Positions 1-34,144 are shown, numbered from the stretch's first letter. The stretch: DNA of 47,259 bases from Paraphysomonas bandaiensis (GCA_965644295.1 CBFFRP010000033.1:1-47259); one strand, 5' to 3'. Notes: generated by a model not told the origin, from the sequence alone. Numbers and translations are program-made.

Positions 1-4
1 GGGC

Positions 5-269: not shown

Positions 270-279
270 TGGTAGCGAG

Positions 280-1983
280 ATGTCAGTTAAAGTTACAAGT
301 TACGACTCAACCGACTCGGATTCGACAACCGACAAGCGAAAGGACTCAATGCCAAAATTCGATGCGAAGAACTTCTCCAGGTGGCAGAAGAAGTGCCGTG
401 CATGGTTCTATCGCAAGCCTAAGATCGTTTATACTCTACAGAACGATCACCCAATTGAGCCTGAAGCAGGAGAAAACTCAGATGACGAGGACTACCAGTA
501 TCGACTCGAACAGTATCAGGATGCGAAACGATATTATGATGAAGGTAATAACTACCTATGGTCAGTCATTGCAAGCTCTATCATTGGTCAGAATGAAGAG
601 GCTGAGGGGATTTTGGAGAACGTCCCCGATGGAGACGGTAAAACCGCCTGGACGGACTTGCTCAACCACTTCAAAGAAAAAACGACTAACGACGTCATCA
701 CTGATCTGATTGGCCAGTTTCAGAGCATAAAAATCAAAAAAGGTCAGTCGATAATCAACTTCCTTGACGCTGTCGAAAAGCTCCGAAACAAGCTGATTAA
801 TTATGGTCATCGGATAAGTGACCAAGATCTCATATCACGCATTCGACAAGGCCTGGTATCCAAAGAAAATATGACGTATCGTGAACTGGCGATCAACCTG
901 CAGATGCACCCTATCGATGACTACAAAACACTCATATGCAGACTACGCGGATTAGGAAGCTCGTCTGTTGGAATGCTCTTGTCAAGCAACGAAGAATCAA
1001 AAACCGACAGTATTCAGCTTGCAGCCTCAAAACCCCCATTTTTCAAAAGTAAAGTGAATTCCAAGCGCAAAAAGGGGACATCTTTCAGAAACCGTTCCAA
1101 TAAACCGAAACATGACAAGAGAGCTGACAAAGACATTAAGTGTTTCCGATGCGATGGAAAAGGACACATCGCTTCAGAATGCAAACACTCATGGGAAAGA
1201 ATCCAACAGATGAAGAATTCCTCTGGAAACAAATCAACCAGTAGGAAATTCAAAAAAGTTAGATTCCAGACCCACCAGAGCACTGAAAACGACGAATCCG
1301 ACCAGTTTGCAGATTATGAAGACAGTGGTCCACTACAACAGAAAGGACGAGACTTCGGAGGAGTCGGATATCCAACAAACGACGAAACGAACTTCGTTTT
1401 TGATCAAGAAGCCGGAATGGGGACCCTTGATTCTGGCTGCTCAGTCTCCATCACACCTGAAGCCGGATACATCACCAATTATAAGGAATGCCTCACCGAT
1501 ATTCAAACAGCTAAGTCAGGATCAACTATGACCTCTTCAGGACATGGAAGACTTGGTATTATCCCCAAGTGCAAGCACGTGGACCATGCTTCAAGGACAC
1601 TCGAATCCATCAGCCAATTAGATGACCTAGGGTATAAAATCTTGTTCGGAAACCAATCAGTTGAGATATATAAAGATGAAATACTGCTATCAAAGGGTAA
1701 GAGAGTTGGAGGCCTATATGAAATTCCGTTAACAGACCTCGGTACTCCTCTTGACGAATCCCACCTTGCTTCAACTGCTTCAGGCCCACTGCTTCAGGCC
1801 CACGATCATGGCGGACAACTAAAGAACGAGCACTCAGCAGCCTTATCGACTCTGGACTCCCACCGAATTTCTGGGAACAAGCCTCAAGGGCGACAATACA
1901 CATCAAGAACAGGTTACCGTGTCAAACAGCTAAAGGATTTATGTCTCCACTTCAGTTTATCGAAAACGAAATACCAGACTTGA
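280..1983 (+). CDS. copia Gag-protease-(pre-integrase) polyprotein; goes out of frame after ~1800
   Basis: CCHC knuckle CFRCDGKGHIASEC, aspartic protease LDSGCS, G-LY-I pre-integrase motif. Confidence 0.9.
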   Translation: MSVKVTSYDSTDSDSTTDKRKDSMPKFDAKNFSRWQKKCRAWFYRKPKIVYTLQNDHPIEPEAGENSDDEDYQYRLEQYQDAKRYYDEGNNYLWSVIASSIIGQNEEAEGILENVPDGDGKTAWTDLLNHFKEKTTNDVITDLIGQFQSIKIKKGQSIINFLDAVEKLRNKLINYGHRISDQDLISRIRQGLVSKENMTYRELAINLQMHPIDDYKTLICRLRGLGSSSVGMLLSSNEESKTDSIQLAASKPPFFKSKVNSKRKKGTSFRNRSNKPKHDKRADKDIKCFRCDGKGHIASECKHSWERIQQMKNSSGNKSTSRKFKKVRFQTHQSTENDESDQFADYEDSGPLQQKGRDFGGVGYPTNDETNFVFDQEAGMGTLDSGCSVSITPEAGYITNYKECLTDIQTAKSGSTMTSSGHGRLGIIPKCKHVDHASRTLESISQLDDLGYKILFGNQSVEIYKDEILLSKGKRVGGLYEIPLTDLGTPLDESHLASTASGPLLQAHDHGGQLKNEHSAALSTLDSHRISGNKPQGRQYTSRTGYRVKQLKDLCLHFSLSKTKYQT

Positions 1984-4738: not shown

Positions 4739-4938
4739 GTTACACGGAGTTTTTACCATTTTTTTTTACTTTTATTCAATACATGATGCTGGACTAGAAG
4801 GATGGTCTCACAATATGGCATCTCTGCAGTTCGCTTATTATTGACTAGTGACTGCTACTCTGGTTTTTACTCTCAGTGTGCATAAGTACATATTCTCTCT
4901 ATTATCTACGGTTCACTGATTATTTCATTGAGGGGGCG

Positions 4939-5202
4939 TATTAGGATTCAGCTTAATACATGATTGTATCTGTGAGTTATAATGTTCAATGAAATATACC
5001 ATGAACTGAATTAGAGAGGTATCTGTCGAAGATACGTGATCGTCATCATAACGTCGTCATTATCAGTTACACTTCTAACTATTCCGTTGTGCATGATAGT
5101 ACGTTCTATATTGTTATTCATAATTTTCACTCTATCGTGTTCATTACTTACACTCTAATAATCACAACATTGTTTTACTATTATAAAGATCAATTCTTTA
5201 TT
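4939..5202 (+). repeat. 3' LTR of copia element
   Basis: Near-identical to 5-269; preceded by PPT. Confidence 0.95.
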
Positions 5203-6321
5203 AGGGCTGATAATGGTAATGGTAATGCCATTATAATTGCCTGGAACTGAACTACCGTTAATGGCATCCCATTAATAAAATGTACTGGTACTTGATATAT
5301 GCTATATATAGAATATAGAACTAAGTGAAATCTATACAATATGTTGAGCAATGTTCATGCAACTCTACAGCACCTTTGTGGAAACTTTCTTGATCATCAG
5401 CGGTAAACTTAATGCTATAAAAGTTAGAAAATAGTTTCCTGAGCAACAACGTAACAACGTAGCTACTCTAACCCAAAAACTCTAAAAAGCGTTAAAAATA
5501 TGCATACTTCACCTAGAAAACATCATAAAAATATTCTTTTTCCCCAAAGTTAAAAGGAGCTGCTGTACATAACTAAGCAAAATAATTATACTCTATAAGT
5601 ATACCATATATTATGCAACGATGGTGGTCAAAGAAAGCTGATGGCAGAGTAATGATCATAGTCTTCTACCGAGTGAATTCGCAGGATCACTGAGTCAGCT
5701 TTTTCGTTCGGGCTCTATGTTATTTCTCTGACACTGAGCGAGCAAACTGGCATTCCTTGATGAAAGATCTAAGGATGTTTAAGAATGGCAGTTTGCTCTC
5801 AACCGACAGCAATCACGACAACAGTGCAGGAACTGATTTTGCACAGGATGTTTTGGACAGGGCCGAGGTCACTAAGAGAGCTCGACTTGGTACCTATGAG
5901 TCCAGCTACCACTGCTTGCTTCATATCGAAGCACAATCTAATGCTGTCTATAGTCGTGCAAAGTTGATTATGTCACCTGAGTGTAGTTGCATGAATCTAT
6001 ATCGTCTAGAATCGTTGCTATTCCTACGAGCCAATTACATGATGTGAGATGCTAATGCCCTCCATGAAGCCCTGAAAGAAGATCCAGTTGTGCCAGTGGA
6101 GAGCGAGAAGTAATTACTATTCGTAGTCTGTTATTACAATTAGTAATTAAGGGTGCACTACTCTATCTATATGAGCGATATTATCTACTTAGGTATTGAT
6201 GGCCATTACTGGCCATTATAATATTATAATTGCCGGAACATTTTTCAATAATGCCATTATAATTGCCGGGAACTGGACTACCATTAATGGGCCATTAATG
6301 GTTAATGGTTAACAGGTTCTG
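5203..6321 (+). mobile_element. Degenerate non-autonomous hAT-like DNA transposon (family 1)
   Basis: 5757-6047 encodes a hAT C-terminal dimerisation-like remnant (SN...SRAKLIMSP...LESLLFLRAN). GCCATTATAATTGCC-type subterminal repeats at both ends. Related end at 42479-42547. Confidence 0.6.
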
Positions 6322-7942: not shown

Positions 7943-7967
7943 TGGACGATGAGGGCTTCGATCCCTC

Positions 7968-8008
<41 letters not shown>

Positions 8009-8015
8009 ATCGCCC
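7943..8015 (-). tRNA. tRNA-Ala (anticodon TGC)
   Basis: 73-nt cloverleaf GGGCGAT...ATCGTCCA, G3:U70 identity pair, anticodon loop TT-TGC-AT, downstream T-run terminator. Confidence 0.96.
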
Positions 8016-8137
8016 TTGATAGGGAAGATGTCGAATATCTTTGGTAATATAAAATAATTACCGTTTTTGTTAAAATTGTAGTTTTTTTGAGATGATGGCT
8101 ACAAAAATTATAACATCAAAAATGACCAACAAAAATG

Positions 8138-8162
8138 TGGACGATGAGGGCTTCGATCCCTC

Positions 8163-8203
<41 letters not shown>

Positions 8204-8210
8204 ATCGCCC
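8138..8210 (-). tRNA. tRNA-Ala (anticodon TGC), identical second copy
   Basis: Identical to 7943-8015; T-run downstream. Confidence 0.96.
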
Positions 8211-8373
8211 TGTGTTGCCAGGATTGAACTGACTTTTCTTGGTTGAAAGAGGTGAAGTATTTGTATTATATAAAGTCATTTTATAAATTTATATTGCTTG
8301 GGAGTACATATTGTTTCAGGGCATCTACAGAGCATGTACACTTCACTGATAGAGTACTCGCAGTGCGTATAGA

Positions 8374-11300
8374 TATACCGACAACAGCATCGGAGGGGCA
8401 GCACCCACATCGGAGGGGCAGCATCCGTAGTCCCGTTTTTCTGTTCTGTACGTGAATATTAGTATGATCGAATGGGGATGGCGGGCTCTTCATATCTACA
8501 CAACCACATCCTAATAAGCGTATCTTCATATTAAAACTATTCGGAATGTACTGTTGTGTTGTTGTGCCCACTGTAGAAACTTAATTTTATCGATTTTATG
8601 CTGTAATGATGCAGGAAGTTCACCCAAATGTTGACCACAGTGGGGATCACACAATCCCATTATCATGAAGTGCTCGTTACAATCATACATCCCTAGTAGA
8701 TGAAGACTGTCCCCTGGATGATTTGTCATTAGATATCTTTTGAAGGAGCTTCAGAAAGAGCTATCAGCGGATGAGGTATACGACGAAAAGTGTTTACATG
8801 AAGCTCTTCTGCAGCAGTGCAGGGCAACTATGAAAGGAAGGATATATGCAAAGATATCCAAAGAGAATGGGGAAATGGAGGGAGAAACAAAACTAGGAGA
8901 CAAGATTTGAAGATAGGTGGCATTGAATATATATCATTATGCTTTATCATGAAGACTTTAAAGCGAACTAGAATTTAAGGACATACATACTTCCCTTGCA
9001 GTAAGTTGTAAGACGAAGTTGTTTGTGAGTATGGATTTCATGATATATACAACTAATGTGGTGTACGTTGTAGATCGCCGTAATGATATTGCATTTCGGT
9101 CAATAGTACATACTTAAATCATCGTATGCCTTATTTGCATGAACCATTTGATGTAACCTAAAACTGTAATGATGTATATTATACTTTCCGTGTAGTAAGC
9201 TATTTATGCATGTATATTGCATGATGTAACAAGTGTAATGTATGCTGTAGGCCGCTGCAATGATATTCGAATTTGTTTTTGTTAATTGCACATACTCAAA
9301 CCTTCGTATGTCACAACTATTTGTCTAACGTTATCTCGCAGCAGCAATTTTTAGCGAGCGTGTGCAAGCAAGCTAGGGACTATTCATTATAGTTTACAGA
9401 CAATCGTTTCAATATACTCATGCTAAGGTATAGCAAGTAGCTATGTAACGCTTGTAAAATGTTTATATGTGCGCGAATAATAAGACGAAAAACGGTTATA
9501 CTGCTTGCTGCATGTCCTCGTAAGCAATCTGTTTCGTGCAAGTACATGGAATTTTTATCATACTATTCCTGGGCAATTTATTTCATACATCGTTTAGATG
9601 TTTCAAAAGTTGTTTCAATTCAGATACTTTTAAAAAATGTTAGTACGCTTCTACTTAATACACTTTTTAAACTAAACATGGTTCAGCTAGAATACTTCTC
9701 ATTTGTTCATACAAAACATGTTAAAACTAAAATATTTTTCAAACAAGACATGTTACAACTAAAACACTTTTCAAACAAGACATGTTACAGCTGAAACACT
9801 TTTCAAACAAAACATGTTTCAACTAATATACTTCAAAAACGTTTAACTCAGATACTCTTCAACGATGATATGTTTCAAGGAAAACAAGAGCTTCAGCTAA
9901 TTCTCCAGCGACTGCTTCAAACTTCTGTCTTATTGCTTCAGCTCCTACTCTTTTCTTGGTCACTTTCTCAGCCTTATACTGCTCTGGAGATAAGGAATTA
10001 AACCTGTCCTTCTCTGATTACCTTCCCAACAGAGCCTAAGCCGCATTCGCATGTTTCGCCAAAGCTGCGGCATTATTTCTTTCTTCTCACCCCTCCTCCT
10101 TGCAAAATTTCTCCACTATATCAGGGGCTTAACAAGCCTTTTCCTACTTTGAAACATCTAAACGATGTATGAAATAAATTGCCCAGGAATAGTATGATAA
10201 AAATTCCATGTACTTGCACGAAACAGATTGCTTACGAGGACAGGCAGCAAGCAGTATAACCGTTTTTCGTCTTATTATTCGCGCACATATAAACATTTTA
10301 CAAGCGTTACATAGCTACTTGCTATACCTTAGCATGAGTATATTGAAACGATTGTCTGTAAACTATAATGAATAGTCCCTAGCTTGCTTGCACACGCTCG
10401 CTAGAAATTGCTGCTGCGAGATAACGTTAGACAAATAGTTGTGACATACGAAGGTTTGAGTATGTGCAATTAACAAAAACAAATTCGAATATCATTGCAG
10501 CGGCCTACAGCATACATTACACTTGTTACATCATGCAATATACATGCATAAATAGCTTACTACACGGAAAGTATAATATACATCATTACAGTTTTAGGTT
10601 ACATCAAATGGTTCATGCAAATAAGGCATACGATGATTTAAGTATGTACTATTGACCGAAATGCAATATCATTACGGCGATCTACAACGTACACCACATT
10701 AGTTGTATATATCATGAAATCCATACTCACAAACAACTTCGTCTTACAACTTACTGCAAGGGAAGTATGTATGTCCTTAAATTCTAGTTCGCTTTAAAGT
10801 CTTCATGATAAAGCATAATGATATATATTCAATGCCACCTATCTTCAAATCTTGTCTCCTAGTTTTGTTTCTCCCTCCATTTCCCCATTCTCTTTGGATA
10901 TCTTTGCATATATCCTTCCCTTCATAGTTGCCCTGCACTGCTGCAGAAGAGCTTCATGTAAACACTTTTCGTCGTATACCTCATCCGCTGATAGCTCTTT
11001 CTGAAGCTCCTTCAAAAGATATCTAATGACAAATCATCCAGGGGACAGTCTTCATCTACTAGGGATGTATGATTGTAACGAGCACTTCATGATAATGGGA
11101 TTGTGTGATCCCCACTGTGGTCAATATTTGGGTGAACTTCCTGCATCATTACAGCATAAAATCGATAAAATTAAGTTTCTACAGTGGGCACAACAACACA
11201 ACAGTACATTCCGAATAGTTTTAATATGAAGATACGCTTATTAGGATGTGGTTGTGTAGATATGAAGAGCCCGCCATCCCCATTCGATCATACTAATATT

Positions 11301-11381
11301 CACGTACAGAACAGAAAAACGGGACTACGGATGCTGCCCCTCCGATGTGGGTGCTGCCCCTCCGATGCTGTTGTCGGTATA
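8374..11381. repeat. Long inverted duplication: arms 8374-9607 and 10148-11381, ~540-bp spacer
   Basis: Arms are reverse complements with only a few substitutions; mirrored ORFs appear in the ORF track. Confidence 0.97.
9650..9880. repeat. Degenerate ~31-bp tandem repeat (ACATGTTACAACTAAAACACTTTTCAAACAA-like) in the inverted-repeat spacer
   Basis: Several recurring ACATGTT...CACTTTTCAAAC units. Confidence 0.75.
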
Positions 11382-12309
11382 CCTGCAATCGACAGGGCGA
11401 CGTTCGCCCTATTTCATCACGACATCTGATATGAATATACTCGCGAGAGAATGCTAGTTGAGATGCGCCAGATGAGCCGCCTTATCGCCCGATATGCATA
11501 TGTATAAATGATAGGACTGTGCCGTATATCCAGAGGCGCAACTGAATCACGTCAGTACTATCACTTCTAGACACCCTCGAGAACAAGCTTTGAAACAAGT
11601 GGTGCATTAGACTGCCGCCAGGGTAGGAATCTGTTTGTGTATTGCAATATTGAACTGCAAGAAGCGTTGATTTCAGAGATAGCATCGACACGATCCTGGG
11701 TGGAACTATTATTGGAAACAGTGTAGCTAATAGTTTCTAATGTTCATGTGCTGAAAACTGTGATGTTCACAAGCGGAATTCTTGTTAAGTGCAGTATATT
11801 ACAATACCATTTTTTGCTCATGTTGCAGTGGCAGAAATACAACCAATTCAACTAGTTGATTTACTTCTCATACAAAATACTTTCACTGTGATATCTCGAC
11901 GTCTGTCGCATTCACTTAGCCGTTTACCAATACACCATGTACAAGGGACATATATTGGATACTAAATGTACAAATATAAAGGACGTTTATAATTGCCTTT
12001 ACTTATCGAAGAATTGGTACCTGCTGTTTTTTCTTTTGCGAATTTATATGACTAAGCATGCTTGATCTGTAAAAAAGATGGGTAGTTGATACATTCTTTC
12101 AACGAATTTAATCTATACGATAGTACGAAATTACTAGTGTTAATTATGAATTCAGAATTGCGTCTTATGTATAGAATATACAAGGCTAAAACTTCTAAAA
12201 ATTAGGCTATATATGAGCCTTGTTACAATAGCCTATATATGACGCGTAGCAGAATGGATGATGAAAGGAATATTAATTTGAAAGAATCTTCTCAATTTCT
12301 GTGTGTACA

Positions 12310-12779: not shown

Positions 12780-14208
12780 CAGGCTTGCGTAACAATTAGT
12801 TGGTTTTAAAAATGACAATTGCAATTAATAGGCTGGCTCAACTATGAAGCAGCTTAAGATGTATAGCAACAGATCATAAGTACAAACCCATTATATATGT
12901 TAGCATACAAGCTTGGATATATGTGCACAGGCACTCTATCATCTTATTAATGATAATTAGGTCAGTATACACTTTAATCTCATCACACATGAGTAATAAC
13001 ATGTCAAATATCGCTAACTGAGCACCTCCACAACGATCGTCTCAATACATAGCATAAGCTGATTGCATATTATACTAAAGTGTATTATTGTAAATGACAT
13101 TGTGCATTCGTTGGTGACTACTATCAGAGGAATCGTTGTGTGCGTCTGCAAGACAACAATCATACAGAGGAATCTGAGTGTGTGTGTGCAAGTATACAGA
13201 TTTCGAGAAAGAAGTAGTCAAAATTCAACGTGGAAGGGAAGAAGAACAAACCGCTATGAAAAAGCACAGGTGCAACGCTTTTTGATAAATAATTTACCTG
13301 CACACGAAGGTGATCTCGATGAAGAGAAAGAGGATGACGAGGAAGAAAAGGCCATTCGCTTACGTAAGGACAACCAAAAGCGCAAAAGCACGTATCAAAA
13401 TAATATATGGTTCCCTCAACGAAGTCGGACTCGCACCTTTTCGTGGTGTTCTGGGGGATAAGTGTGGAACAGAATCTTCCTGGGAAACAAACGTGAGTCG
13501 CAAACAGAGACAGCAGATATTGTTCTGCCCATTCATAGTCAATGCTTGTGTGGTACAACGTACATTAATATAAGTGTCACTTGTGTAGACGTCTTTGGAC
13601 CTTAACGACTAAACAGGCATCCGGAAAATAGGCCCACCTCAAAGGGTAACCGGTAACCGGGGTATTGGGCTGCCTGCTGCTGAAGTCAAGTATCAGGGCT
13701 GGAGGACTCAAAAGTGGTTGCACCTTGTTGGTGTTTGTGGTGACGCACAAACTTTCGTAGCGTTGAATATTAGGATATCAGAGTTAAGCACTAGTTAGTT
13801 ATATTACAATGCTAAGTTATTTCCGAGTCTTAACGCTTATTTCTAAGAATAAGACATTTAGTACTACAATATCGTTGCATGAAGTACTTGTATAGCACTA
13901 CTAATGTTTGTGGGAGGTTGTTTACCAGTAGGCATGTTAGTGTGAGAACTAGTGTTCCTTGAAACTAAACAGAGTCAGTCTTGCACTTAATACTAATATC
14001 CTACTATTTGTTGCTACGGAGGCTGCTTGTATTGTTTGTAGGAGCGAATGACACTAGACACCTTGTAATGTTGATGATTCTGCGTGCTAATTGTCATTTT
14101 AGAGATGAGATTATAGTTGACAATAATTGGATGTTTGGTTAATAATTGCAACTATTATTGTTGGATACCTATCACCAATTTATTTTCAATTAATGTTAGG
14201 CAAGCTTG
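12780..14208 (+). mobile_element. Non-autonomous hAT element (family 2) with nested retroposon
   Basis: TIRs CAGGCTTGCGTAACA / TGTTAGGCAAGCTTG, 8-bp TSD CTAGTATG / CTAATATG, transposase C-terminal remnant YRCMKYLYSTTNVCGRLF. Confidence 0.85.
13413..13864 (+). mobile_element. Short retroposon family copy B (near full-length, inside hAT)
   Basis: Starts CCCTCAAC. Degenerate 12-bp TSD TAATATATGGTT / TACAATATCGTT (9/12 match). The empty site is visible in the hAT copy at ~38150-38180. Confidence 0.85.
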
Positions 14209-18662: not shown

Positions 18663-19157
18663 ATTATTGAAAGTCTTTTATTTAGCAATAGGCGTTAAAA
18701 GCCTGCACCAATTTAGTAGCTAGATGAATGCTAGTCAACCTAGTTAGACCTCTACCCGTAACTAATCAGTACAAACTCTATTATCCTACTATTTAACGCT
18801 ACGAAAGCTGCTTGTGCGTCGCCGCAAGCACCAAGGTGCAACCACTTCCGTTCTGAGTCCTTAAGGTGAACATTAGCAGGCAGCCCATTACCCCGGTTAC
18901 CCTTGAGGTGGGCCCTGTCCCGGATGCCCTTGTGGTGGGCCCATTTCTGGATGCCTGTTTATTCGTCAGGGCCCAAAGACGTCTACACAAGTGACACTTA
19001 TTGGTGTCCCTTGTACCACACAAGCAGTCGGCTATGAGTGGGCAGAACAATATCTGCTGACTATGTTTGCGGCTCACGTTAGTTTCCCAGAGAGAATCTC
19101 TCCGGTACTTATCCCCAAGAACACCACGAAAAGGTGCGAGTCCGACTTTGTTGAGGG
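18663..19157 (-). mobile_element. Short retroposon family copy C (both ends present, 495 bp)
   Basis: Both termini present; perfect 13-bp TSD TCAAAACAAGATA at 18650-18662 and 19158-19170. Confidence 0.9.
19070..19157 (-). ncRNA. Candidate HDV-like ribozyme (Pr77-like) at the 5' end of copy C
   Basis: P1 CCCTCAAC / GTT..GGGG (imperfect), P2 CGG(A)CTCGC / GTGAGCCG, P3 ACC / GGT with 7-nt L3 TTTTCGT, P4 CCGGAGAG / CTCTCTGG, J4/2 CTAA. Confidence 0.72.
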
Positions 19158-19785: not shown

Positions 19786-20407
19786 TCTCTTCAGATTAGT
19801 GATTAATGTTTATTTTAATTGACCTGAATTTTGCGACGTGCTAATCTTTGGCAAAGGGTTTAATAGTCTGCCGCTAGGAAAGTAGAAGTGAAGAAAGCTA
19901 TAGTATATTATCTAGTCTTCATTGAGTGTTGCCTAAAGTATCATTGGTAAAGCATTGTGACAACTGCTTCTATATGGGCCATTCGCTCAACCTAAAATTT
20001 GCGCGGTAAAACCGTCGAGTCGATCAGTAGGACGCAACGACTTTTCGAGAGAAAAACAGCGTTTCAGCAACAGCATTCGACTGTCAATGTTTTGATGTTG
20101 ATGACAATGTTGAATGTGAAAATGGGGGAAGATATCGAAGCGAGGACACTTTTTATAGAGGCTGATAAGTCCGCTAGCTTCCGAATATTTCGGGATTCAG
20201 CGAAACACACAACCTCGTTTTGGGTAACATAACTTTCTCTGAATTTTGAATCTTAGCAATTCGTGTTAAATAGACCCAAACTTTATAGCTGTGGCAGTAG
20301 ACACTACTTCTTTATGACTTTAAGATATTGATTATAATTTTAATAATTGAGTCTGTATACAACGTTCAGTTAATTCACAACGTCAAAATTAGATACGCTT
20401 TATTTTG

Positions 20408-20494
20408 CCCTCAACAAAGTCGGACTCGCACCTTTTCGTGGTGTTCTGGGGGATAAGTACCGGAGATATTTCTCCGGGAAACTAACGTGAGCCG
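20408..20494 (+). ncRNA. Candidate HDV-like ribozyme (Pr77-like) at the 5' end of copy E
   Basis: Same double-pseudoknot arrangement as copy C. P4 CCGGAGA / TCTCCGG is flanked by AGTA and GAA; the catalytic-position C lies in CTAA. Confidence 0.75.
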
Positions 20495-21618
20495 CATATT
20501 ATATAGTCAGCAGATATATTGTTCTGCCCACTCATAGCCAAATGCTTGTGTGGTACAAGGGACACTAATAAGTGTCACTTGTGTAGACGTCTTTGGGCCC
20601 TGACGAATAAACAGGCATCCGGGAATGGGCCCACCTCAAGGGCATCCGGGACAGGGCCCACCAGAAGGGTAACCGGGGTATTGGGCTGCCTGCTGAAGTT
20701 AAGCATCCGGGATGTTCACCTTAAGAACTCAAAACACCTGAAGTCAGCAGATGTCAGGTATATCAACATTCTGCTTGCTCCCTGCGTTTGCTTTGAGTGA
20801 TTGATGCTGAGTATGAGTTCACATTATTCGGTATCTGTGTGGCCAATGACCGAGGTAATGCGTCAAACTTTCCTCATGGATGCATGGCAATGGCAATGAT
20901 GTGATTAGACCTGTCATGTCTTCTCACACGTCTACTGCCTAGTCTTGGTTTCTCCCGACCCAGGTCATTGAGATTATATCAAGGCTCTGGCACTGTTCTC
21001 CAAGCAGTGTCAGGTACATTTGTGGTGCTTTTATGTTATTCTTGCTTAGTAGGTTTTCATCCGAGCGGGGAAGGTGCACGGTTTCCTACTAGTGTAAGTC
21101 ACTCGGGAGAAGAGTGCAAGGTGGATGCATGTGCTGGATGAGTGCACACAATGGAGGGAAGACATTGGAGTCAGCTTGAATTTGTAACAGATTTTGGTAG
21201 ATGTCTGTTTCATGCGTCAGTGTGCAAAATTGCACCAGTGAGACCGCTTCGTGACCGTGGGAGGACCCGGCGCTATAGAGCTACTTTATTCTCCCTTCCA
21301 GACTACCTGCTGCTGTGAACACCACCTTGAAGAGGGCCCTAAAGATCTGCCGCATATACAGGAGACATATGCCGAAGACACCGACCGCAAGTTGTTTGTG
21401 TTAGGACAAGTAGATTGGGCAGGAGCGTATGATCCGGCTTAAACACGCAACTCGTCGTATGCCCATGTAGCTAACTAAATCGTGTTGTATAGTTGAGCAC
21501 TTGTCGGTGCATGCAATAGTAACTAGATGAGAGTCATGTTATGCATAGTGTCGCGCGAGTTGTTAGGTTGGTCGCGGCAACGCACAAGCTTGCGCTTCTT
21601 AATAATCAGATTTTCAAT
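20408..21618 (+). mobile_element. Long copy E of the retroposon family, with a degenerate coding-like interior
   Basis: Family 5' region 20408-20800 and a diverged 3' end (CGCACAAGC..AATAATCAGA). Flanking direct repeat ATACGCTTTATTTTG(CC) at 20393 and 21619. Confidence 0.8.
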
Positions 21619-22942
21619 ATACGCTTTATTTTGCCACATATAATATAGAATCAAGACTTTTATTTATTTCTTTAGCTTGAAGATATGATTAATTCTTACG
21701 CTCCTGCTACTTGAAAACAAAGATAGTTCATTAGTATATTCACTCAGCCATGCGTATACTATTGATTACACATAGTACTTATCAATATATATACTATGAC
21801 ACACCCACATCACGACGACAAATCAAGGGGTCCCTAGATACATACTAATTAACTGCAAATGTTATGCATTAATTGAATGTCTGTTATGGCTAGCTATCGA
21901 CCGCGCTACATTAGCTACCACGTCAACAACCTGTACAACAGGTCTAGCAGAACTAAGCATTCTTACCACAAGTGAATGTAGTGCCTCCCCACTAATGAAT
22001 TAAAAAAATCAAAACAATAACACAGCCCGAGTGCGCTTGTGACAAGCATCATCATATCTAGTTGCCGTCACTATTACCACCATAAAACAATCAACCTAAA
22101 ATCCATTCAGTTCGCATTATCTGCTGTTGTAGACAGTATGTTGTGCCACATAACGGCCACTTCCCAAACTATTCTATGGGCCATTTTTCACTTCTGACAC
22201 ACTATATAAAAATAAATTAATGTAACAAAGTCGATAGCCTGCAATGCGTACCTCCCGCAATTAAATGGCAATGTTGCGCAACAAACCGGCCAGATGAATG
22301 ACGTTCGGGTGATTTCTTTTGCCATGAAAGAAGTAGACTTTTCGAAAGCATTGAGGGTGTGGCTGTGTCATGAGGTCAGTAATACCATTGAATATAGGTG
22401 AGTATACACAGTCATTGATTAAGTGGAACTATCGTGTACAAGTCATCATTAGGAGGTGATGCTATGAGATATGTTGAAAGGGGGGTCTCATATCTTGCGT
22501 GATAGTGTAGATTAGAATCAACAAGAATGCGGTAGTCAATCTGCGCAACATCTAGACATGCACACATCTTCACTGTTCAACTGTACATTCTTCATTCCAC
22601 GAGCAAAAAAATCTTTTTTTTTCAGTTTTGGCTGTGAGTTGATGCTCGAACCATTATTTTATGCGGGTTCAGTTTTTAGGTTTGATACATGTGCTGCTAT
22701 AATACTGAGGCGTGCAGTGACCCTGGATAAGAACTTCGAGGAGCTAAATGGCCATCGTGATGTCGTGAAGAAATGGAAGCAGAGTCGCGTTTCGTTTTGA
22801 ACAAATCCGACACCCACAAGCAGATGTTGTTGATACAGTTTTGCGCGTGTTTCAAAGTATATGAGAAAGTTTATCGCACCTCCCCGTTGACCATCGTCTC
22901 TACCTCCCTCCTCTGCACCAGAATAGCCCCACTCTCACCAAT

Positions 22943-25900
22943 ATGCTGAAGCATTTTGCTGGAGAATTGGTTTTAAGTGAAAACGGCTCCTTGCTGCAGT
23001 CAGGAAACATAATCTTGAATGGAGTTCAAGGCACAGGGAAAACGACTCTACTCAAAGCAATGGTTCTTGTGGTTGCCATTAGTTGTGATAAATTCTTTTT
23101 TATTTATCATAACTACGAAACTGGATTAGAATCAAGTAGTCAGCTGATAGCGGAATGTGTTCATCGATTCGTGAATGGAATATGTAACGGGAAATTTGGA
23201 GATTTCGCCGCGGAATATTCGCATGACACACATACTTGCTTGAGAACATTGTCAGGACATAATTGTTATATCGGAATTGCGGCAGATGAAGTTCAAGATG
23301 TGGTTGTGATAGATGATAATCTTTTGTGGCGTATCAATATAATGAAATCGTTGGAAGAATTTTCTAGAACTGAGCTGCATCATGTTTTCTTGATTTTAAC
23401 TGGATCATCATCGAGTCTTATTCGACTTCTATTTCGTTCTAGGCGCCCCGCGAGCCTGCAGAACTTTGACTTCGACCTCAATGCCTCCCTATGTCAGCGA
23501 AATGATGTTCCTGCCAATCGCACTGTACATTCCCTGAGGTCTTACCTGTCCGAAGCTACCCACATCTGAAATTTTCAGACTCTGAGATCTGTGCGATGCT
23601 TATGGCCACTGGTGGGATTGGGCGCTTTGTTCATAACTACGTCCAGAATCCAATGGCTGGTGCTAGTTCTGGGCGGAAGGTGGACCCACGGACCGTCGTG
23701 TATGCTGACCCTTCTACCTTATATTGCTAATTGTGAATTTGATTGTGTCAATGAACTCCAAGCTCTTTGACAGTTTGAAGAACGGCATATTTGAGGGTCT
23801 TGAAAGTTGCCCTGGTGTTTCCCAGAATATAGTAGAAGATGTACTGGCGGAAACAGGGCAATATAACGCTAATGATGCCATAAACAATCTAGTTGACCAG
23901 GGTATTCTCTATATCTCTGACGATGGTCCATTGCACGACATGTTAACTGTCGAATTGGCTGTCCCTCAGGACTACCAACACTTTACCATAGATGACATAT
24001 CTTTTGATGATATATGGAAGCATCGAAAACAACGCCGGCAAAGCTTTTGAGAGATTCGAGCGTTTTCGCTTGCATCTATTAAACTCTCGATTTCTGTATC
24101 ACGGGCGGTATTTGATCATCGTCTACGGTAATCTTTACGTTGGACGTTATACCGACGCTAGGTATTCAAGAGAGCGCAGTTCGCATTGTGAAGTAGTGGT
24201 TGAACTAATCACGTTAACGAAGATGAAATGTTAACACGGGAGGGAGAAACTGGCGTTGATGTTATCTGTATACGCGTGGAGATGACCGATCGTGACAATC
24301 GTACTGTTTATGGTAGAAGAAGGCCAAATAAACAAGATTTGAAAATTCCCACTGTTATGGTTGATGGTTGGCAATGCAAGGGTGGTTATTGGAAGTTATC
24401 CATGGGCGAGGGAGTCATGAAATCTAGTCGCGACCTATGCATAGAAACTGGTAGGGTTGAGAACATCAGCGATAAGTTACTAAATGGAGTTTTTGCCAAA
24501 GCAGAGGTTGGGCTTCTAACGATTATTTAGTCTATATACAACACCATTGGTAATTATTCCGTTGCTGTTGGTCAAACTTATAATAAATACCTACCAAAGA
24601 TGGTACATTACCTGAGAAGACATTGGACAGAAGTTACAAGATTCCACGTAACATGGTGTCGATGATTTCTGGAATATGTAACGGGAAATTTGGAGATTTC
24701 GCCGCGGAATATTCGCATGACACACATACTTGCTTGAGAACATTGTCAGGACATAATTGTTATATCGGAATTGCGGCAGATGAAGTTCAAGATGTGGTTG
24801 TGATAGATGATAATCTTTTGTGGCGTATCAATATAATGAAATCGTTGGAAGAATTTTCTAGAACTGAGCTGCATCATGTTTTCTTGATTTTAACTGGATC
24901 ATCATCGAGTCTTATTCGACTTCTATTTCGTTCTAGGCGCCCCGCGAGCCTGCAGAACTTTGACTTCGACCTCAATGCCTCCCTATGTCAGCGAAATGAT
25001 GTTCCTGCCAATCGCACTGTACATTCCCTGAGGTCTTACCTGTCCGAATGCTACCCACATCTGAAATTTTCAGACTCTGAGATCTGTGCGATGCTTATGG
25101 CCACTGGTGGGATTGGGCGCTTTGTTCATAACTACGTCCAGAATCCAATGGCTGGTGCTAGTTCTGGGCGGAAGGTGGACCCACGGACCGTCGTGTATGC
25201 TGACCCTTCTACCTTATATTGCTAATTGTGAATTTGATTGTGTCAATGAACTCCAAGCTCTTTGACAGTTTGAAGAACGGCATATTTGAGGGTCTTGAAA
25301 GTTGCCCTGGTGTTTCCCAGAATATAGTAGAAGATGTACTGGCGGAAACAGGGCAATATAACGCTAATGATGCCATAAACAATCTAGTTGACCAGGGTAT
25401 TCTCTATATCTCTGACGATGGTCCATTGCACGACATGTTAACTGTCGAATTGGCTGTCCCTCAGGACTACCAACACTTTACCATAGATGACATATCTTTT
25501 GATGATATATGGAAGCATCGAAAACAACGCCGGCAAAGCTTTTGAGAGATTCGAGCGTTTTCGCTTGCATCTATTAAACTCTCGATTTCTGTATCACGGG
25601 CGGTATTTGATCATCGTCTACGGTAATCTTTACGTTGGACGTTATACCGACGCTAGGTATTCAAGAGAGCGCAGTTCGCATTGTGAAGTAGTGGTTGAAC
25701 TAATCACGTTAACGAAGATGAAATGTTAACACGGGAGGGAGAAACTGGCGTTGATGTTATCTGTATACGCGTGGAGATGACCGATCGTGACAATCGTACT
25801 GTTTATGGTAGAAGAAGGCCAAATAAACAAGATTTGAAAATTCCCACTGTTATGGTTGATGGTTGGCAATGCAAGGGTGGTTATTGGAAGTTATCCATGG

Positions 25901-26687: not shown

Positions 26688-27213
26688 GTAGTGAATATCT
26701 TATTTTTAGCAATATGCAATTTATATAGGTTTTGCAAGTCCTTAAGATGAACATCCCAGGGAGAATCTGTTCGGCACTTATCCCCCAGAACACCACGAAA
26801 AGGTGCGAGTCCGACTTTGTTGAGGGAACTTTCTGCCCACTCATACTCAAATGCTTGTGTGTACAAGGAACACTAATAAGTGTCACTTGTGTAGACGTCT
26901 TTGGACCTTGACGACTAAACAAGTATCCAGGAATGGGCCCACCTCAACGATATCCGGGGTATTGGACTGTGGACTGCCTACTGAAGTCAAGCATCCGGGA
27001 TGTTCATCTTAAGGACTCAAAATCCTGAAGTCAGCAGATGTCATGTATAATATAAACATTCTGCTTGCTCACTGCGTTTGCTTTGAATGATAGAGCGAAA
27101 GTGGTTACACCTTGTTGCTTGCGGTGACGCACAAGTAGCTTTCGTAGCGTTAAATAGTAGGATATCAGAGATAATCACTCATTCTTAAAGCCTATAATAA
27201 TGAGACATCCACA
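26688..27213. mobile_element. Head-to-head pair of retroposon copies: F (-, 26688-26826, internally deleted) and G (+, 26831-27213, 5'-truncated)
   Basis: GTTGAGGG end of F is followed by AACT, then TTCTGCCCACTCATA from the family interior. Confidence 0.8.
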
Positions 27214-27604: not shown

Positions 27605-28254
27605 AACGCTCAGTCGAGGGATAAGCACCCCCCAGCTTAAGAATCAGCAGCACCACCGCGATGATAACGATGATAATAATATTAGCTGCAAAATTATCAG
27701 ATATGCGTGAATGGCACTTGAGAAGAAACTACCTCTCGCCACTCAATAGGCATCGCTTACTCCCTGTGGCATATCACGGATCGGGTAACAGAGACAAATT
27801 CCTAAGAGTACCAAAAATGCCTCGTAGGAGTACAAAAACAACAGATTCGCTTCGTCACCGAAAACACACTGCTTTTCTTGTGTATTCTTGGTAAGAGTAT
27901 GTGTAATCATCTGAGTAGTAAAAGAAACACTGCCCAGTGCGGCGTCAACCAAGAGTGTAACTACAATTGGGAACAGAAGCAGTAACGCTACCAGTAAAAA
28001 GTGTGAAGTGCCGTGACCTTTACACGTTGAAAACCACTGTTTAAAACAAGATTAATGCGCCATGTCTTCGCAATAAGTGGAGTCAGCATCATCGCAAACC
28101 CGAGGTGTCCTAGCACGTAGGCAGCTAAACAGGAATCATCATTTACCGGTAGAGATAGAGTTATTCCGAAAGCAATCAATGCTGCTCCACCGGGAAATAT
28201 AGTACTGCCTAATTCCGGCTGTAAGATGCGCACAATCCTCCGATTACAATAGTA
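27605..28254 (-). pseudogene. Partial duplicate of the class C GPCR 7TM region (copy of ~31818-32465)
   Basis: Near-identical sequence including an intron; 2-bp insertion frameshift near 27997. Confidence 0.92.
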
Positions 28255-29440
28255 GCAGGGGCAACTTGTAACGCAATAAATACTTCTAGTAACAACTATC
28301 ATTGCAACCTTTTTTTCATCATTAACCTTTAGATACAAATTACAGTAAAATAACAATTTAATACTTAGATATGAAACCTGGTGAAATCGCTTTACCAGGT
28401 TTTGGTATTACCTCGACTTTTAGAGAATAATATGACAATTGCACCAGATTAAATCAAACAATAAATCCCAAGATTTCAATAATAGCTACAGCAAATAATG
28501 TACTCCTACCACAAAAGGGTGCTGAAGGTATATAGCAACTCCGAGGTATTAAAGTCGTACATTATTGTGAAAAATAGTAGTCGCAGGAGGCTTCTTGCTG
28601 TCATTGTTATCATCATAACTTTTATGTTCATCATCACGCTTATTAACCTCTGCTAGTGCAACCGACTTGGTTGTTGTGTGCATGACATGAGGCACATACA
28701 CACAAGAAGGAGGAGGGCAGGGGAGCGCTCTGAGCCGCTTAGGCATATATTATTGTTATTGTTAGTAATATTGCACCTGATGTTGTCACATTGTCTACAT
28801 TAATATTTGCTAAACCTCCTGATACATTTAAAGTTTCTGAAACTGTATTTACTTTTATAGTATTTATATATGCCTTATATGTTGATGTATCTATTATAGT
28901 AGAAACTGTAAAACTTGTATTTGTTAAGTTGCTTGAATTAACATTCGTTATATCAAGTTCAAAATTTTTTATCACTTGTTAAACCATTGAAATATATGAT
29001 TGAACCATTGCTATAATTATATGTCAACACATTTGAAGAAAACGTATGTGTTGTACTAATTGATTCGCTTATTTCCTGATGAGCACAACGCTACCTATAA
29101 ACCCTGAAAGGGCTGGGTGCCACTGCTCATAATATATCATATATGTGGTATTTGAACTCTCCACAATAATTATTGAAGTTGTTGTTGCAAAGTCCTAGTT
29201 TTGAATATTGATCACTTGAACTGCTTTTATTTAAAATTTAGATCTTCTATATCACATACGAAGGATGGAATATACTTGAAGTATCTATTTTTTACCCGGT
29301 GATAATATGAGTATCTATTTTTACCTGATGCTAATATGAACCTTCTGTTAAACCCAATTTAGGTAAGAACTCTTTTAGAGACAAAGTGGATAAAACTATT
29401 CTATGCTAGTTTAATACAATGAGTAGTTATTATGATAATA

Positions 29441-31064
29441 AATAAAGAATTGATCTTTATAATAGTAAAACAATGTTGTGATTATTAGAGTGTAAGTAAT
29501 GAACACGATAGAGTGATAATTATGAATAACAATATAGAACATAACTATCATGCACAACGGAATAGTTAGAAGTGTAACTGTTAATGACGACGTTATGATG
29601 ACGATCATGTGTGTATCTTCGACAGATACTTCAGTTTATGATATATTTCAGTGAACATTATAACTCACAGATACAATCTTGTATTAAGCTGAATCCTAAT
29701 ACGCCCCCTCAATTAAATAATCAGTAAACCGTAGATAATAGAGAGAATATGAACTTATACACACTGAGAGTAAAAACCAGAGTATCAGTCACTAGTCAAT
29801 AATAAGCGAACTGCAGAGATGCCATATATTGTGAGACCATCCTTCTAGTCCAGCATCATGTATTGAATAAAAGTAAAAAAATGGTAAAAACTCCGCGTAA
29901 CTCAAACTAGCCACCCAGGTCGCTTGTGGCTTGGTAATTGAGATTTAGGTGTCTCTGAGGTTGTTGATCGCTTTCTGTTGTTGCTGGATGGGATGTCGAA
30001 CCCAGCTCCCCCCCGCAATGTGCGGAAGTTAATTGCTCCTAGTGGTTTTGTAAGGAGGTCGGCTAACATTGACTTGTTGGTGGATATATGATCAACAGTA
30101 ATATACGTTCTCGGCAATATATGTTCTCGGATGAAGTGATATCGAATCGCGATATGTTTAGTACGTCGATGATGAGTAGGATTGTAACATAATTGGACTG
30201 CACCTATATTATCGCACCAAATAGTTGTTGAGAATGGAAGTTTGAAACCAATTTCTGATAATAAAGAGCGTAGCCATAATGCTTTCTGAGCTGCTGACGA
30301 TAAAGCCGTATACTCAGCTTCAGTAGATGACAATGCCACAGTTGTCTGTAATCGTGATATTATTGCCACGATATAAGACAATTACCTATGAAGAATGTAA
30401 AAGCTGTAGTGGACCGTCGAGTGAGATGACATCGTGCCCAATCGCTATCGCAGTATCCTGACAATGTTATGTGGGATCCAGAATATATCAATCCTTGCTT
30501 AGCAGTGCCTTTGAGATACCTAAGAACATGTAACAAAGCATTAGATTAGGCATATCAGAAAATCTGGCTAGAGTATTGACTGCGTAGGCGATAACCGGTC
30601 GAGTGCATACAGCTAGATACATCAGGAAACCTATGTGCTCCTTGTAGGGGAAATTCTGAACATAACTTTGATTTGATTCTGAAAGATGATTGTATTCATG
30701 TATATCATAGTTTAATGAAAATAACATAGGTGTTGACATGGGTTTACAGTTGGACATATTGAATTTGTCCAGTAGTTTGTTGACATACTGCTCCTGACTG
30801 AGAGTCGTGATATTCTTATCAAAGTCTTGATGGATGGAAATGCCCAAGTAATAATCTAAGAGTCCGAGATCCGTAATTTCGAACTTTTTGGATAAATGGT
30901 CTTTGAATAGTTGGATATCAGTGTCGGATGCAGATGCTATAATAATATCATTCACATACATGGCTATTAGCATAATCCTGCCATTAATCTGTTTTTTGAA
31001 TATACACGGGTCAGATATTACTCTGGTGAAACCCATATCTAGCATAAAATTTGTACAGCACTTA
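29441..31064 (-). mobile_element. Older 5'-truncated copy of the same copia family (RT-RH + 3' LTR 29441-29701)
   Basis: High similarity to ~3560-5202; YVDD mutated to YVND; frameshifts. Confidence 0.95.
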
Positions 31065-31240
31065 AGCCTATGGATTATGGAAGTAAGAATAAGTGGCCAC
31101 AAAAAACATTAAAAAAAATACACTTATCTTACTATCGAGGCTAGAGCAACTAAAAAGTACGAAAATATCGTGATTTACATTTCAGTGACATATCTATACA
31201 TTACACTATTTCAATTTGTTGGAAGCAATACATTGAAGCA

Positions 31241-34144
31241 CTAGGCTTCACATTGTTCTGGTACAGAATCTAACGAGAATTGTGAATTCATCTGTTTGTC
31301 ATTCTTTGACTCAGATGGTACTTCTTCCAGGTTGGGTCTCAACGACGATTTAATTTGAGTATGATTCGACGGCGCAAGAGCTTCTGACATGCTTTCCCGA
31401 TACAGTTGCTTGTTCGCAATATGGGCAAGCCGTTGGTTAAGGCGTTCGATTTCAAGTTGAATCTTCCACTTCTCATCATGCTCTATGTCTGTAGTGCTGA
31501 CACGAACGTGATCTGACTCGTCCGGTGCAACACTTTTAGTGCCGGATCGAGTGAAGAACAAGACGATAGATCTACAAAGACACGACTTAAGTTTCCATCG
31601 AAATGGAGCAGAAACACACTTACTTTCTAACAAATACGGGTTTATGGCTGTCCACGATTTCGAATCGCTTGTTGAGGTCCAGTCCCTAAAGAAATACAAT
31701 CAAACATCGTTTCGAAAATCATTCAGTGCGCAACCTGCAAAGATTTGAATATAGCGTCGTGATACAAACACATGATAACACTGATTGCACCAGACAGCAT
31801 TGCCATCGCAATTATAAAACGCTCAGTCGAGGGATAAGCACCCCCCAGCTTAAGAATCAGCAGCACCACCGCGATGATAACGATGATAATAATATTAGCT
31901 GCAAAATTATCAGATATGCGTGAATGGCACTTGAGAAGAAACTACCTCTCGCCACTCGATAGGCATCGCTTACTCCCTGTGGCATATCACGGATCGGGTA
32001 ACAGAGACAAATTCCTAAGAGTACCAAAAATGCCTCGTAGGAGTACAAAAACAACAGATTCGCTTCGTCACCGAAAACACACTGCTTTTCTTGTGTATTC
32101 TTGGTAAGAGTATGTGTAATCACCTGAGTAGTAAAAGAAACACTGCCCAGTGCGGCGTCAACCAAGAGTGTAATTACAATTGGGAACAGAAGCAGTAACG
32201 CTACCAGTAAAGTGTGAAGTGCTGTGACCTTTACACGTTGAAAACCACTGTTTAAAACAAGATTAATGCGCCATGTCTTCGCAATAAGTGGAGTCAGCAT
32301 CATCGCAAACCCGAGGTGTCCTAGCACGTAGGCAGCTAAACAGGAATCATCATTTACCGGTAGAGATAGAGTTATTCCGAAAGCAACCAATGCTGCTCCG
32401 CCGGGAAATATAATACTGCCTAATTCCGGCTGTAAGATGCGCACAATCCTCCGATTACGATAGTATATCAGCACTGCAGCGAAGGAAACACATATGATAG
32501 CCACAATGACGGCCGCACTTCGCAGTACCACGACTAGCGGTGTTGACATGCGTAAGGTTTTCCTCCGCGGTCTATCACGAGGTGGATCGTTCGTTGGCGT
32601 ATTGAACTTATATGTGTAACACTCTTCATCATTCGAATTACAATCTCTATACCCGCTGTCTGTATTAATATATCCTACCACAACAAATCCCTCCGTCAGG
32701 TTCACATTATTCGAACTGAGAAAAATATCAGCCTGAAAGTTAACCACCTCATAGAGCATATCACTGAGTCGGTCATTATTCTGCCTATCAGGAAAGGGTT
32801 CAAACTCCACCCGACCGCTAGCACCGTTGAAGCTAATATAATTCATGCTTTGCATGAGAAGGTAGTAGTGAAACGGGTAGTTAATGTCGTATTTGTCAAC
32901 ATGAATATAATGATGAAGTGCATGGGCCAGAGATATAACAGCATCGTACGCGAAAAATGTATCGTCATATAAGTCTACTCCTGTAGAATCGAAGGATGCA
33001 TGGTCGAGTCCCGCGCATACAGTACCCTCATTATTCTGATGTAGGTAGTTGCCAACCGAGTCAGTGGCATTGTTGCAGTCCGATTGATCTCCATCAGTCG
33101 ACGGCTGTGATCTGAACCTGTGTATAAAATCCAATGCCTCAGGCGTAGATCGGTTGACAATGGAGCGAAAGGCGATCGCTCCGTGCAACAATTCTGCGAT
33201 TTGTGTACTATCGAAGTGTGCACTCAGATGTGTCTTCCACACCACGGGGTCTGTAAGAAATCCCGATACAATAAGTTGCGTACCAGGTTTAAGCAAGCCG
33301 TAGTCATAGGCCGCTTTAAGAAACGCACTCCCATGAGATGCCGATGCGTATACAGCAATAATATTAAAATTTGTGGCAGCGATCTCCACAATAATATCGG
33401 TATAATCTGTCTGGATGGGGTAGATTATATGATCTGTGCGTTCGATTTCGGATTGTTCAATGCCAAGGTAGTCCGTGAAGAAAATATCGTACTTGAACGA
33501 GGAGTGAAAGCCAAACGACGTATATGCTTTTACTACTGCCACTCTCGTCCACTTAAACTTCTCATAGGTGAGAAATGGAGCTACGTATCCTTCCTGTGCA
33601 GAAGGGGGATTTGTTCTCACGAAGTTGTTGTATACACGGTTAGTAAAGTCATCCTCGTCAGCGTGATATCCTATCTGAATTATGCCATTCTCCATCAGTA
33701 ATTTTGCCCCACCTGTAGTATAGAGTGACAACAAGTCAATTCAATCAATTCAGTACCTTCAATAGGAGCATTTTCTTGAGGGCCAATAACTGCCCGAACA
33801 CCTTCGTCGACAGCATACAGTGCAGAAACAGCACCAGCCGTTTTTGTGTTCGCCGGCTGGGCTGATATGACACTGAATGTTATATTGGGCAAAATATCGT
33901 CATAGATGCCATCCGTTTTATTGTTAATTTCACTTATAGCCAATAGAATAGCCGACTTGTACTGCAGGCCCTCCGGGTCGATATCCCCTGCACGGAATAT
34001 GAGTTGGAGAGAGCAAATCACTCACAACAAACCTGTCGAGAGGAAATTATTAAACATGACTCCAGTTTTATATTCCTGTGTCCATGTTGCCACACAAAGA
34101 CCTGACACCACACTGAGCACAGCCACTAGCAACCCGTTTATCAT
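31241..34144 (-). CDS. Class C (GABA-B-like) GPCR: signal peptide, Venus-flytrap/ANF-receptor domain, 7TM, coiled-coil-like tail; 5 short introns
   Basis: Motifs AISEINN..ILPNITF, VRAVIGP, FAYDAV, SFNGASGRVEF, IAKTWRI. GT-AG introns (e.g. 33713-33756) join the ORFs in frame through to the stop at 31241. Confidence 0.88.

Follow-up and report, generated by a model that had tools for sequence, protein, structure and literature searches.

A candidate HDV-like ribozyme of the L1Tc (Pr77) type heading a LINE-dependent retroposon in a stramenopile-like protist

The stretch of DNA analysed here (the window, 47,259 nucleotides) comes from the genome of Paraphysomonas bandaiensis (62.5 Mb in 669 contigs) and contains six sequences that open with the same 22-nt repeat start, CCCTCAACAAAGTCGGACTCGC. 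These lie at 13413(+), 19157(-), 20408(+), 26826(-), 41104(+), and 41932(+), the six positions given in the earlier note, and all match with zero to two mismatches against a chance expectation of 0. The copy at 20408, the focal element, is a complete member of a long non-coding retroposon family, and the remaining window copies belong to a sister ("short") family of ~0.5 kb with the same head. In each window copy aligned with its flanks, similarity begins exactly at CCCU. The copies are listed below, with bit scores from the covariance model R1 described further on.

20393 to 20407 and again 21619 to 21633, no strand: target-site duplication ATACGCTTTATTTTG, flanking the focal copy and abutting its first base (C1)
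20408 to 21618, plus strand: long-family non-coding retroposon, complete focal copy of 1,211 nt, 3' end read directly
18665 to 19157, minus strand: short-family copy, with the duplication TATCTTGTTTTGA on both sides
13413 to 13875, plus strand: short-family copy, older and decayed, 3' end approximate (R1, 21.2 bits)
41932 to 42392, plus strand: short-family copy, decayed, 3' end approximate (R1, 23.1 bits)
26692 to 26826, minus strand: mini-copy of ~135 nt with an internal deletion, head nt 1-73 fused to the element's final ~60 nt
41104 to 41159, plus strand: head fragment, first 56 nt only, without P4 and P2'
26831 to 27211, plus strand: 5'-truncated copy that begins near element position 115, head-to-head with the 26826 mini-copy

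The focal element had been described as part of a short retroposon family, but it measures 1.2 kb (20408-21618). It contains no open reading frame above 93 aa, and 25 other long-family copies are 97.4-99.8% identical over the shared length (~1,212 nt). The long family terminates in ...AATAATCAGATTTTCAAT, without poly(A). Its 3' 822 nt gave 262 candidates in the genome, and 89 near-exact tails were found. The other long-family copies are flanked by unrelated target-site duplications of 11-15 bp, nearly all touching C1, and of 20 readable copies, 19 have a duplication that adjoins C1 with zero extra bases. Across 30 genomic copies, similarity likewise starts at the first C, and the DNA upstream of it is unrelated from copy to copy. 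Three same-strand long-family copies lie within 3.2 kb at G000:C421:68996-72190 (L061), with tails 1.4 and 1.8 kb apart, and may form a local array.

The short-family copies at 13413, 19157(-), and 41932 have their first ~330-390 nt in common with the long family and then diverge. The final ~190 nt of the 19157 copy (18854-18665) correspond at 91% identity to the 3' UTR of a LINE encoding SET, APE endonuclease, and reverse transcriptase (RT) domains. The sequence AGTTAAGCACTAATTAGTTA was considered as the short-family 3' end and ruled out, the element extending ~100 nt more to the LINE terminal motif. The 26826 mini-copy lacks P2' and also ends in this motif. It sits on the minus strand 4 nt from the truncated plus-strand copy (26692-27211), a head-to-head pair that may reflect inversion at the time of insertion or two nested insertions. 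The head core is identical between the long and short consensus sequences (69/69) compared with 202/213 over the next 213 nt, a modest excess of conservation (P about 0.03).

Heads of this type are abundant in the genome. The 32-nt core has 442 exact matches as opposed to 0 with the reversed control, and first-look candidates numbered 1,970 with a 93-nt head query, 3,465 with a short-element query, and 3,930 with a covariance model, that is, ~2,000-4,000 overall. The element is also present in RNA-library contigs from three coded organisms, as well as in marine metatranscriptomes (20 sequencing runs, all as assembled contigs, which do not record RNA 5' ends), many of the RNA-library contigs running through the cut site predicted below.

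The 3' ends of the elements point to resident LINEs. A partner LINE was located on another contig.

G000:C440:4173-13235 (L111, L114), minus strand: partner LINE with one 3,021-aa open reading frame encoding SET, APE endonuclease, and RT

The SET domain lies upstream of the APE endonuclease and RT, and C433 carries a second copy with 98% identity across 8.5 kb. The long element and three LINE families share the terminus AATAATCAGAnnTTCA, preceded in all of them by a stem-loop motif of the ACGCACAAGC type; GCACAAGC occurs in two LINE families. Both retroposon families are non-coding, are flanked by target-site duplications, and have a 3' end shared with LINEs; they are therefore LINE-dependent non-autonomous retroposons. 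The lack of coding capacity, the target-site duplications, the many dispersed copies, and the LINE-shared 3' end are features of SINE-like elements. No partner LINE was found for the long family. Intersecting the lists of RT and tail matches located no LINE, and tandem tail matches on C365 and C608 were rejected as LINE candidates, being SINE copies within duplicated DNA. Model R1 found no match in the open reading frame and 3.7 kb of upstream sequence of the partner LINE (one full copy scanned, its 5' end unmapped). Because this copy has no ribozyme-model match, the analysis suggests that the element is a chimera, with head and tail from different sources, rather than a LINE deletion derivative.

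Numbered from nt 1 at 20408, the 87-nt head contains in order the strands P1, P2, P3, L3, P3', P1', P1.1, P4, J4/2, and P2'.

20408 to 20494, plus strand: candidate HDV-like (L1Tc-type) ribozyme, head of the focal element, identified by signature and helices (R1, 42.2 bits, E=1e-8)
20408 to 20413, plus strand: P1 5' strand, C1-A6, pairing with U40-G45 (20447-20452)
20421 to 20429, plus strand: P2 5' strand, nt 14-22 with A17 bulged, pairing with 20487-20494 (nt 80-87)
20430 to 20442, plus strand: P3 ACC/GGU (20430-20432 / 20440-20442) around L3 UUUUCGU (20433-20439), a loop identical to that of the environmental relative L084
20443 to 20446, plus strand: extra G36-U38 and mismatched C39 between P3' and the paired P1', an atypical feature
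20460 to 20477, plus strand: P4 hairpin of 7 bp (CCGGAGA, loop UAUU, UCUCCGG) between AGUA and GAA, followed by CUAA
20478 to 20486, plus strand: J4/2 GAAACUAAC, with C75-U-A-A at 20482-20485

The nested double pseudoknot that the earlier note had drawn is thus available at 20408-20494 with all strands in place, including P2 with its bulged A, the ACC/GGT P3 with a 7-nt loop, and the P4 hairpin between AGTA and GAA ahead of CTAA. P2 forms 8 stacked pairs compared with a mean of 3.2 for non-cognate strands. P1 had been called imperfect with a 2-nt bulge or mismatch; the helix is present, and also appears in the minimum-free-energy fold, but it comprises six of seven pairs (C1-G45 to A6-U40) followed by a mismatch of A7 (20414) with C39 (20446) and the extra G36-U38. 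No version with a standard 7-nt P1' was found in this genome. U28 (20435) can pair with A46 (20453) to give P1.1, C79 is unpaired and adds one base before P2', and L3 carries UUUU at nt 26-29. We take C75 (20482) to be the predicted catalytic cytosine from what is known of the HDV ribozyme, and the cleavage site predicted by the fold would lie directly 5' of C20408.

P4 is the only part of the head that varies between the subfamilies, and its pairing is retained. Between 20408 and 19157, a G-C pair is gained through a U-to-G change together with an inserted C, and a G.U pair results from one C-to-U change. The earlier statement that P4 differs between copies yet stays paired holds for these two, but the 41104 fragment has no P4. 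In the decayed 41932 copy, G15A and C18A disrupt P2.

The closest known counterparts are trypanosomatid retroposons. L1Tc, NARTc, and SIDER elements start with the 77-nt Pr77 unit, which is both a promoter and an HDV-like ribozyme (PMC3185411, PMC3383444, PMC4035085), in agreement with what the earlier note had said of a ~77-nt unit heading such elements, and 78-nt ribozymes at the 5' ends of Trypanosoma congolense L1Tco and NARTco are reported to be highly active (PMC4035085). Like the focal head, the units of this group (including L1Tc, NARTc, L1Tco, NARTco, ingi/RIME, and SIDER) occupy the extreme 5' end of a non-LTR retroposon, start with CCCU (CUCU in L1Tco), and follow the order P1, P2, ACC, U...CGU, GGU, P1', nnn-AGUA, P4, GAAnCUAA, P2'. 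Both have a single-pair P1.1, a C rather than a G at +1, and one or two unpaired bases between CUAA and P2', and both are carried by non-autonomous elements too. In contrast to the trypanosomatid units, the present host is a marine stramenopile-like protist, P1 has 6/7 pairs with three bases before P1', J1/2 is 7 nt instead of 1-2 nt, and the elements lack poly(A). NARTc and RIME are moreover deletion derivatives of L1Tc and ingi, whereas here the LINE that supplies the tail has no ribozyme-model match.

The ordered blocks common to the head and L1Tco/NARTco are the CCCU start, CACCU, CGUGGUG, GGG-nnn-AGUAC, and GGAAnCUAA, and a 23-base signature, ACCU-nnn-CGUGGU ... GGG-nnn-AGU ... GGAAnCURA, fits both the head and the active L1Tco ribozyme (PMC4035085). 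In this genome the pattern scored 442 matches, and its reverse 0. Used as a variable-gap pattern on metagenome contigs, the blocks retrieved 26 loci against a rough chance estimate of 2. Two identical GC-rich loci resemble chance matches, and the remaining 24 are plausible relatives, although assignment to the class by core sequence is partly circular, the pattern having been derived from the focal head. A scan of viral contigs with the signature gave no matches.

Outside the bases fixed by the pattern, the 24 relatives have an upstream 7-nt strand complementary to the 7 nt preceding nnn-AGUA, for example CCCCAUC/GAUGGGG, CCCUAGC/GCUAGGG, CCCUCCC/GGGAGGG, and CUCUGAC/GUCAGGG. The bases flanking ACC on its 5' side and CURA on its 3' side pair as P2 (UGGGUAC/GUACCCA, UUACAACA/UGUUGUAA, GCGUGGAU/AUCCACGC). 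In a MAFFT alignment of eight sequences from which the focal head was left out, 96.0% of cells were paired, compared with 37-50% in slid controls, 12 pairs had changed on both sides, and 0/500 shuffles did as well. A second alignment of 22 sequences, including two heads from this genome, was fitted to the model and is to that extent biased towards the structure; it gave 96.3% paired cells (41-50% slid), again 12 pairs changed on both sides, and 0/500 shuffles as good on 4/5 measures, with 2/500 on the both-sides-changed count. P1 positions 4-7 each show three to five pair types among the relatives. P1.1, the third L3 base with the first base past P1', is mostly U-A and is C-G in L082, G-C in L085, and A-U in L1Tco; this is the only L3 position that pairs in every sequence. 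The 22 aligned sequences are invariant for P3 and for the L3 pattern U...CGU. The class therefore covaries in P1, P1.1, P2, and P4; the fold of the relatives is an HDV-type nested double pseudoknot, and the class includes experimentally active members.

Covariation, which the earlier note had named as a check on the fold, is accordingly present for P1, P2, and P4 among environmental relatives, but none was seen within this genome for P1-P3 in 74 heads from 60 loci and 20 further model matches. Those genomic heads all belong to one lineage, in which differences are confined to P4 or reflect random decay. When the best P1 was sought freely in the 48-nt upstream stretch, discrimination was poor (6.65 cognate vs 6.12 non-cognate pairs) because all P1' strands are G-rich, and fixed-position alignments were used.

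The irregular P1 of the focal head can be placed against these sequences. Its P1' (CUGGGGG) is identical to that of L083, whose partner strand is CCCUCAG compared with CCCUCAA in the focal head. A 6-pair P1 would fall within the class range, since the top P1 pair is mismatched in 4/15 class combinations. The unpaired GUU insert between P3' and P1' is unique to the focal head, the relatives having exactly 7 nt there save for L082. In that sequence (L082:214-297), a 4-nt GGCU insert between P3' and P1' pairs with AGUC of J1/2 and extends P1 to ~11 bp. GAAnCURA is kept in all relatives and directly abuts P2' in L063, L082, and L084; an extra C before P2' also occurs in L085 and L083, and two extra bases occur in L1Tco.

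The genomic settings of the relatives are diverse. One lies beside a Tc1-like transposase and one beside a Ty3/gypsy element. At L086:2121-3553 (the same locus as L063 and L067), the relative at 2707-2778 lies ~535 nt downstream of a twister-P1-like match (E=2e-4), and a GOLLD-like RNA follows ~360 nt downstream of the relative (60.8 bits, E=3e-14, below the Rfam gathering score). A ClpP gene is found 3.6 kb further on, and its nearest atlas clusters are bacterial. This locus may encode a large non-coding RNA flanked by self-cleaving ribozymes, and its context is bacterial- or phage-like. Because one relative stands in such a context, beside the GOLLD-like RNA, the shared signature marks a structural subclass and does not testify to common descent with the trypanosomatid elements.

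A covariance model (R1) built from eight relatives, with the focal head left out, matched only the six head copies when applied to the 47-kb window. The best matches were 20412-20494 (42.2 bits, E=1e-8) and 19070-19153 (40.1 bits), followed by the decayed copies at 21-23 bits and two fragments at 13 bits; the core part of these scores is partly circular, as the pattern came from the head, whereas the P2 pairing is not. The earlier note had proposed a search with HDV-like descriptors and an alignment to L1Tc/ingi 5' ends as checks. Rfam gave no HDV-like match in the window or the head (20300-20600), neither above its gathering score nor with E relaxed to 10; this blank is uninformative for the subclass because eight relatives with clean helices likewise gave no match. 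When the head and NARTco were aligned globally, the score fell short of significance (z=1.3). A classical Pol III SINE promoter in the head appears unlikely, since UUUU, a Pol III terminator, occurs in L3 and no tRNA, 5S, or 7SL match was found by Rfam in 20300-20600 at E up to 10.

Element base 1 coincides with P1 base 1, the predicted cut site of the class. An active process still defines C1: thousands of young copies begin at this site without upstream flank. The process may be self-cleavage, or else an internal promoter may direct accurate initiation. The intact P2', P1.1, and C-U-A-A far downstream of the start, the modest excess of conservation in the head core, the confinement of head differences to a P4 that stays paired, the near absence of extra 5' bases, and the signs against Pol III favour cleavage; counting against it are the irregular 6-pair P1 and the three extra bases between P3' and P1', which do not pair as the L082 insert does. 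From these sequence comparisons, we consider that the head is probably a self-cleaving HDV-like ribozyme, one that falls in the structural subclass of L1Tc/L1Tco (Pr77). The element RNA would be transcribed within a longer RNA or from its own promoter, and the head would fold into the nested double pseudoknot P1-P2-P3-P1.1-P4. C75 of the C-U-A-A junction would then catalyse a cut just 5' of C1, so that the freed RNA would begin precisely at element base 1. Its 3' end, bearing the terminal motif and stem-loop common to resident LINEs, would be used by a LINE APE-RT protein for target-primed reverse transcription, and the outcome would be full-length copies from C1 with 11-15-bp target duplications on either side. 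In this scheme the anatomy of the element, the class signature and its covariation, the LINE-shared tail, and the exact 5' ends are observed; the cleavage reaction and its chemistry, and the LINE that serves the long family, are inferred. The earlier description of a RIME/SIDER-like self-cleaving mobile RNA stands as regards the signature, the covariation of the class, and the predicted cut site at base 1, but sits less well with the atypical P1 and with a LINE copy that has no ribozyme-model match.

It is less likely, though the strongest of the alternatives, that the head descends from an HDV-like ribozyme but has lost cleavage owing to the P1 defect and 3-nt insert, and that this relic now serves as an internal Pol II promoter and/or a stabilising 5' structure, with C1 set by initiation. 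Pr77 unites promoter and ribozyme, the head combines an atypical P1 with an insert in a genome devoid of the standard 7-nt P1' version, and RNA-library contigs cross the predicted cut site, all of which agree with such a relic. It leaves unexplained, however, why P2' (80 nt downstream), P1.1, and C-U-A-A are intact and invariant in both young families. An extra 5' base often marks capped templates, and such a base is absent at 19/20 junctions. A 6-pair P1, which would fall within the range of the class, also counts against this reading.

A structured 5' module recognised by protein (for example, in LINE RNP assembly, export, or protection), in which the fold is only a scaffold and neither catalytic nor a promoter, seems improbable. 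An invariant head on a variable body would fit such a module, as would the partner LINE copy without a ribozyme-model match, which implies that the head is dispensable for reverse transcription by that LINE. Against it, the conserved unpaired bases of the head (L3 U and G, C-U-A-A) are those of the catalytic core in HDV-type ribozymes, and a scaffold gives no reason for the element to begin precisely at P1 position 1. Chance resemblance, with the head an ordinary SINE 5' end such as a Pol III promoter and the pseudoknot an artefact, is very improbable: the non-significant NARTco alignment, a nested-fold folding z-score of only -0.7, and the absent Rfam HDV match would be expected from it, but the 23-base signature, for which the control gave 0 genomic matches, retrieves sequences with strong independent double-pseudoknot covariation, the independent model R1 matches only these heads, and a head with an internal UUUU would stop Pol III and has no tRNA/5S/7SL similarity.

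A self-cleaving head would have parallels beyond the trypanosomatids. In R2 and SIDE, an HDV-like ribozyme sets the 5' end by cutting a co-transcript, as proposed here, and the short non-coding derivatives retain the ribozyme head and a 3' end for target-primed reverse transcription (PMC3414825). R2 and SIDE, however, derive from their own LINE and are site-specific in 28S rDNA, whereas the present families occupy dispersed sites with varied duplications and appear to have head and tail from different sources. HDV, CPEB3, and other HDV-like ribozymes (RF00094 etc.) have the nested double pseudoknot topology of the head, as well as its 3-bp P3, a 7-nt L3 with U and G, and a cytosine followed by n-R-A ahead of P2', but in the head the base of P1 is C-G instead of a G.U wobble and P1.1 is one pair. 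Hammerhead retrozymes, Sm-alpha, and twister variants of Schistosoma non-LTR elements are further cases of a self-cleaving RNA processing the transcript of a non-coding mobile element (PMC4918200, PMC8501958), although their ribozymes are of a different class and retrozymes have a circular-RNA life cycle. Classical Pol III SINEs share the head-body-tail build, a LINE-derived tail, thousands of copies, and target duplications; unlike them, the present elements have a head that is not derived from tRNA, 7SL, or 5S and contains UUUU, and the long family reaches 1.2 kb.

The principle would be that of L1TcRz/Pr77 and R2/SIDE; the differences lie in the host, in the irregular P1, in a LINE tail lacking poly(A), and in the chimera-like build. 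Unrelated contigs from environmental eukaryotes carry the same core, as does the one bacterial- or phage-like locus, where it lies between a twister-like match and a GOLLD-like RNA. We tentatively suggest, as a possibility short of an even chance, that the L1Tc/Pr77-type ribozyme is a portable module used across very distant hosts and not a trypanosomatid hallmark, fused here to the tail of a LINE that gave no ribozyme-model match. If so, the element would be a SINE-like parasite that owes its 5' end to RNA self-cleavage instead of a Pol III promoter, and its 6-bp P1 with the 3-nt insert would mean that the P3'/P1' joint can accept extra bases without loss of the fold. Should the head cleave, the retroposon family of a stramenopile-like protist would begin with an HDV-like ribozyme, and the element would be a clear case of a SINE-like element with head and tail of different origin. 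The open literature searched yielded no paper that connects stramenopiles with HDV-like ribozymes. Its thousands of young copies could provide a natural system for studying ribozyme-defined 5' ends, and the 24 covarying environmental relatives make a ready seed alignment for a subclass missed by current Rfam models.

The window has several other features. A Ty1/copia retrotransposon occupies 1-5205, with gag, zinc knuckle, and RVT_2 matches over three frames and terminal repeats of ~270 bp (5-272, 4939-5205), and a second Ty1/copia copy, inverted, partial, and 94-98% identical, is found at 29440-31064. Two near-identical tRNA-Ala(UGC) genes (7943-8015 and 8137-8210, minus strand) lie just upstream of a perfect 1,237-nt inverted repeat at 8371-11384, the arms of which are 540 nt apart. 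The regions 23176-25349 and 27605-32465 contain a perfect tandem duplication with a period of ~1.5 kb and a duplication at 98-100% identity whose copies lie 4.2 kb apart. On the minus strand, 31857-33734 is a long open frame whose product resembles class C GPCRs and has ANF receptor and 7tm_3 domains.
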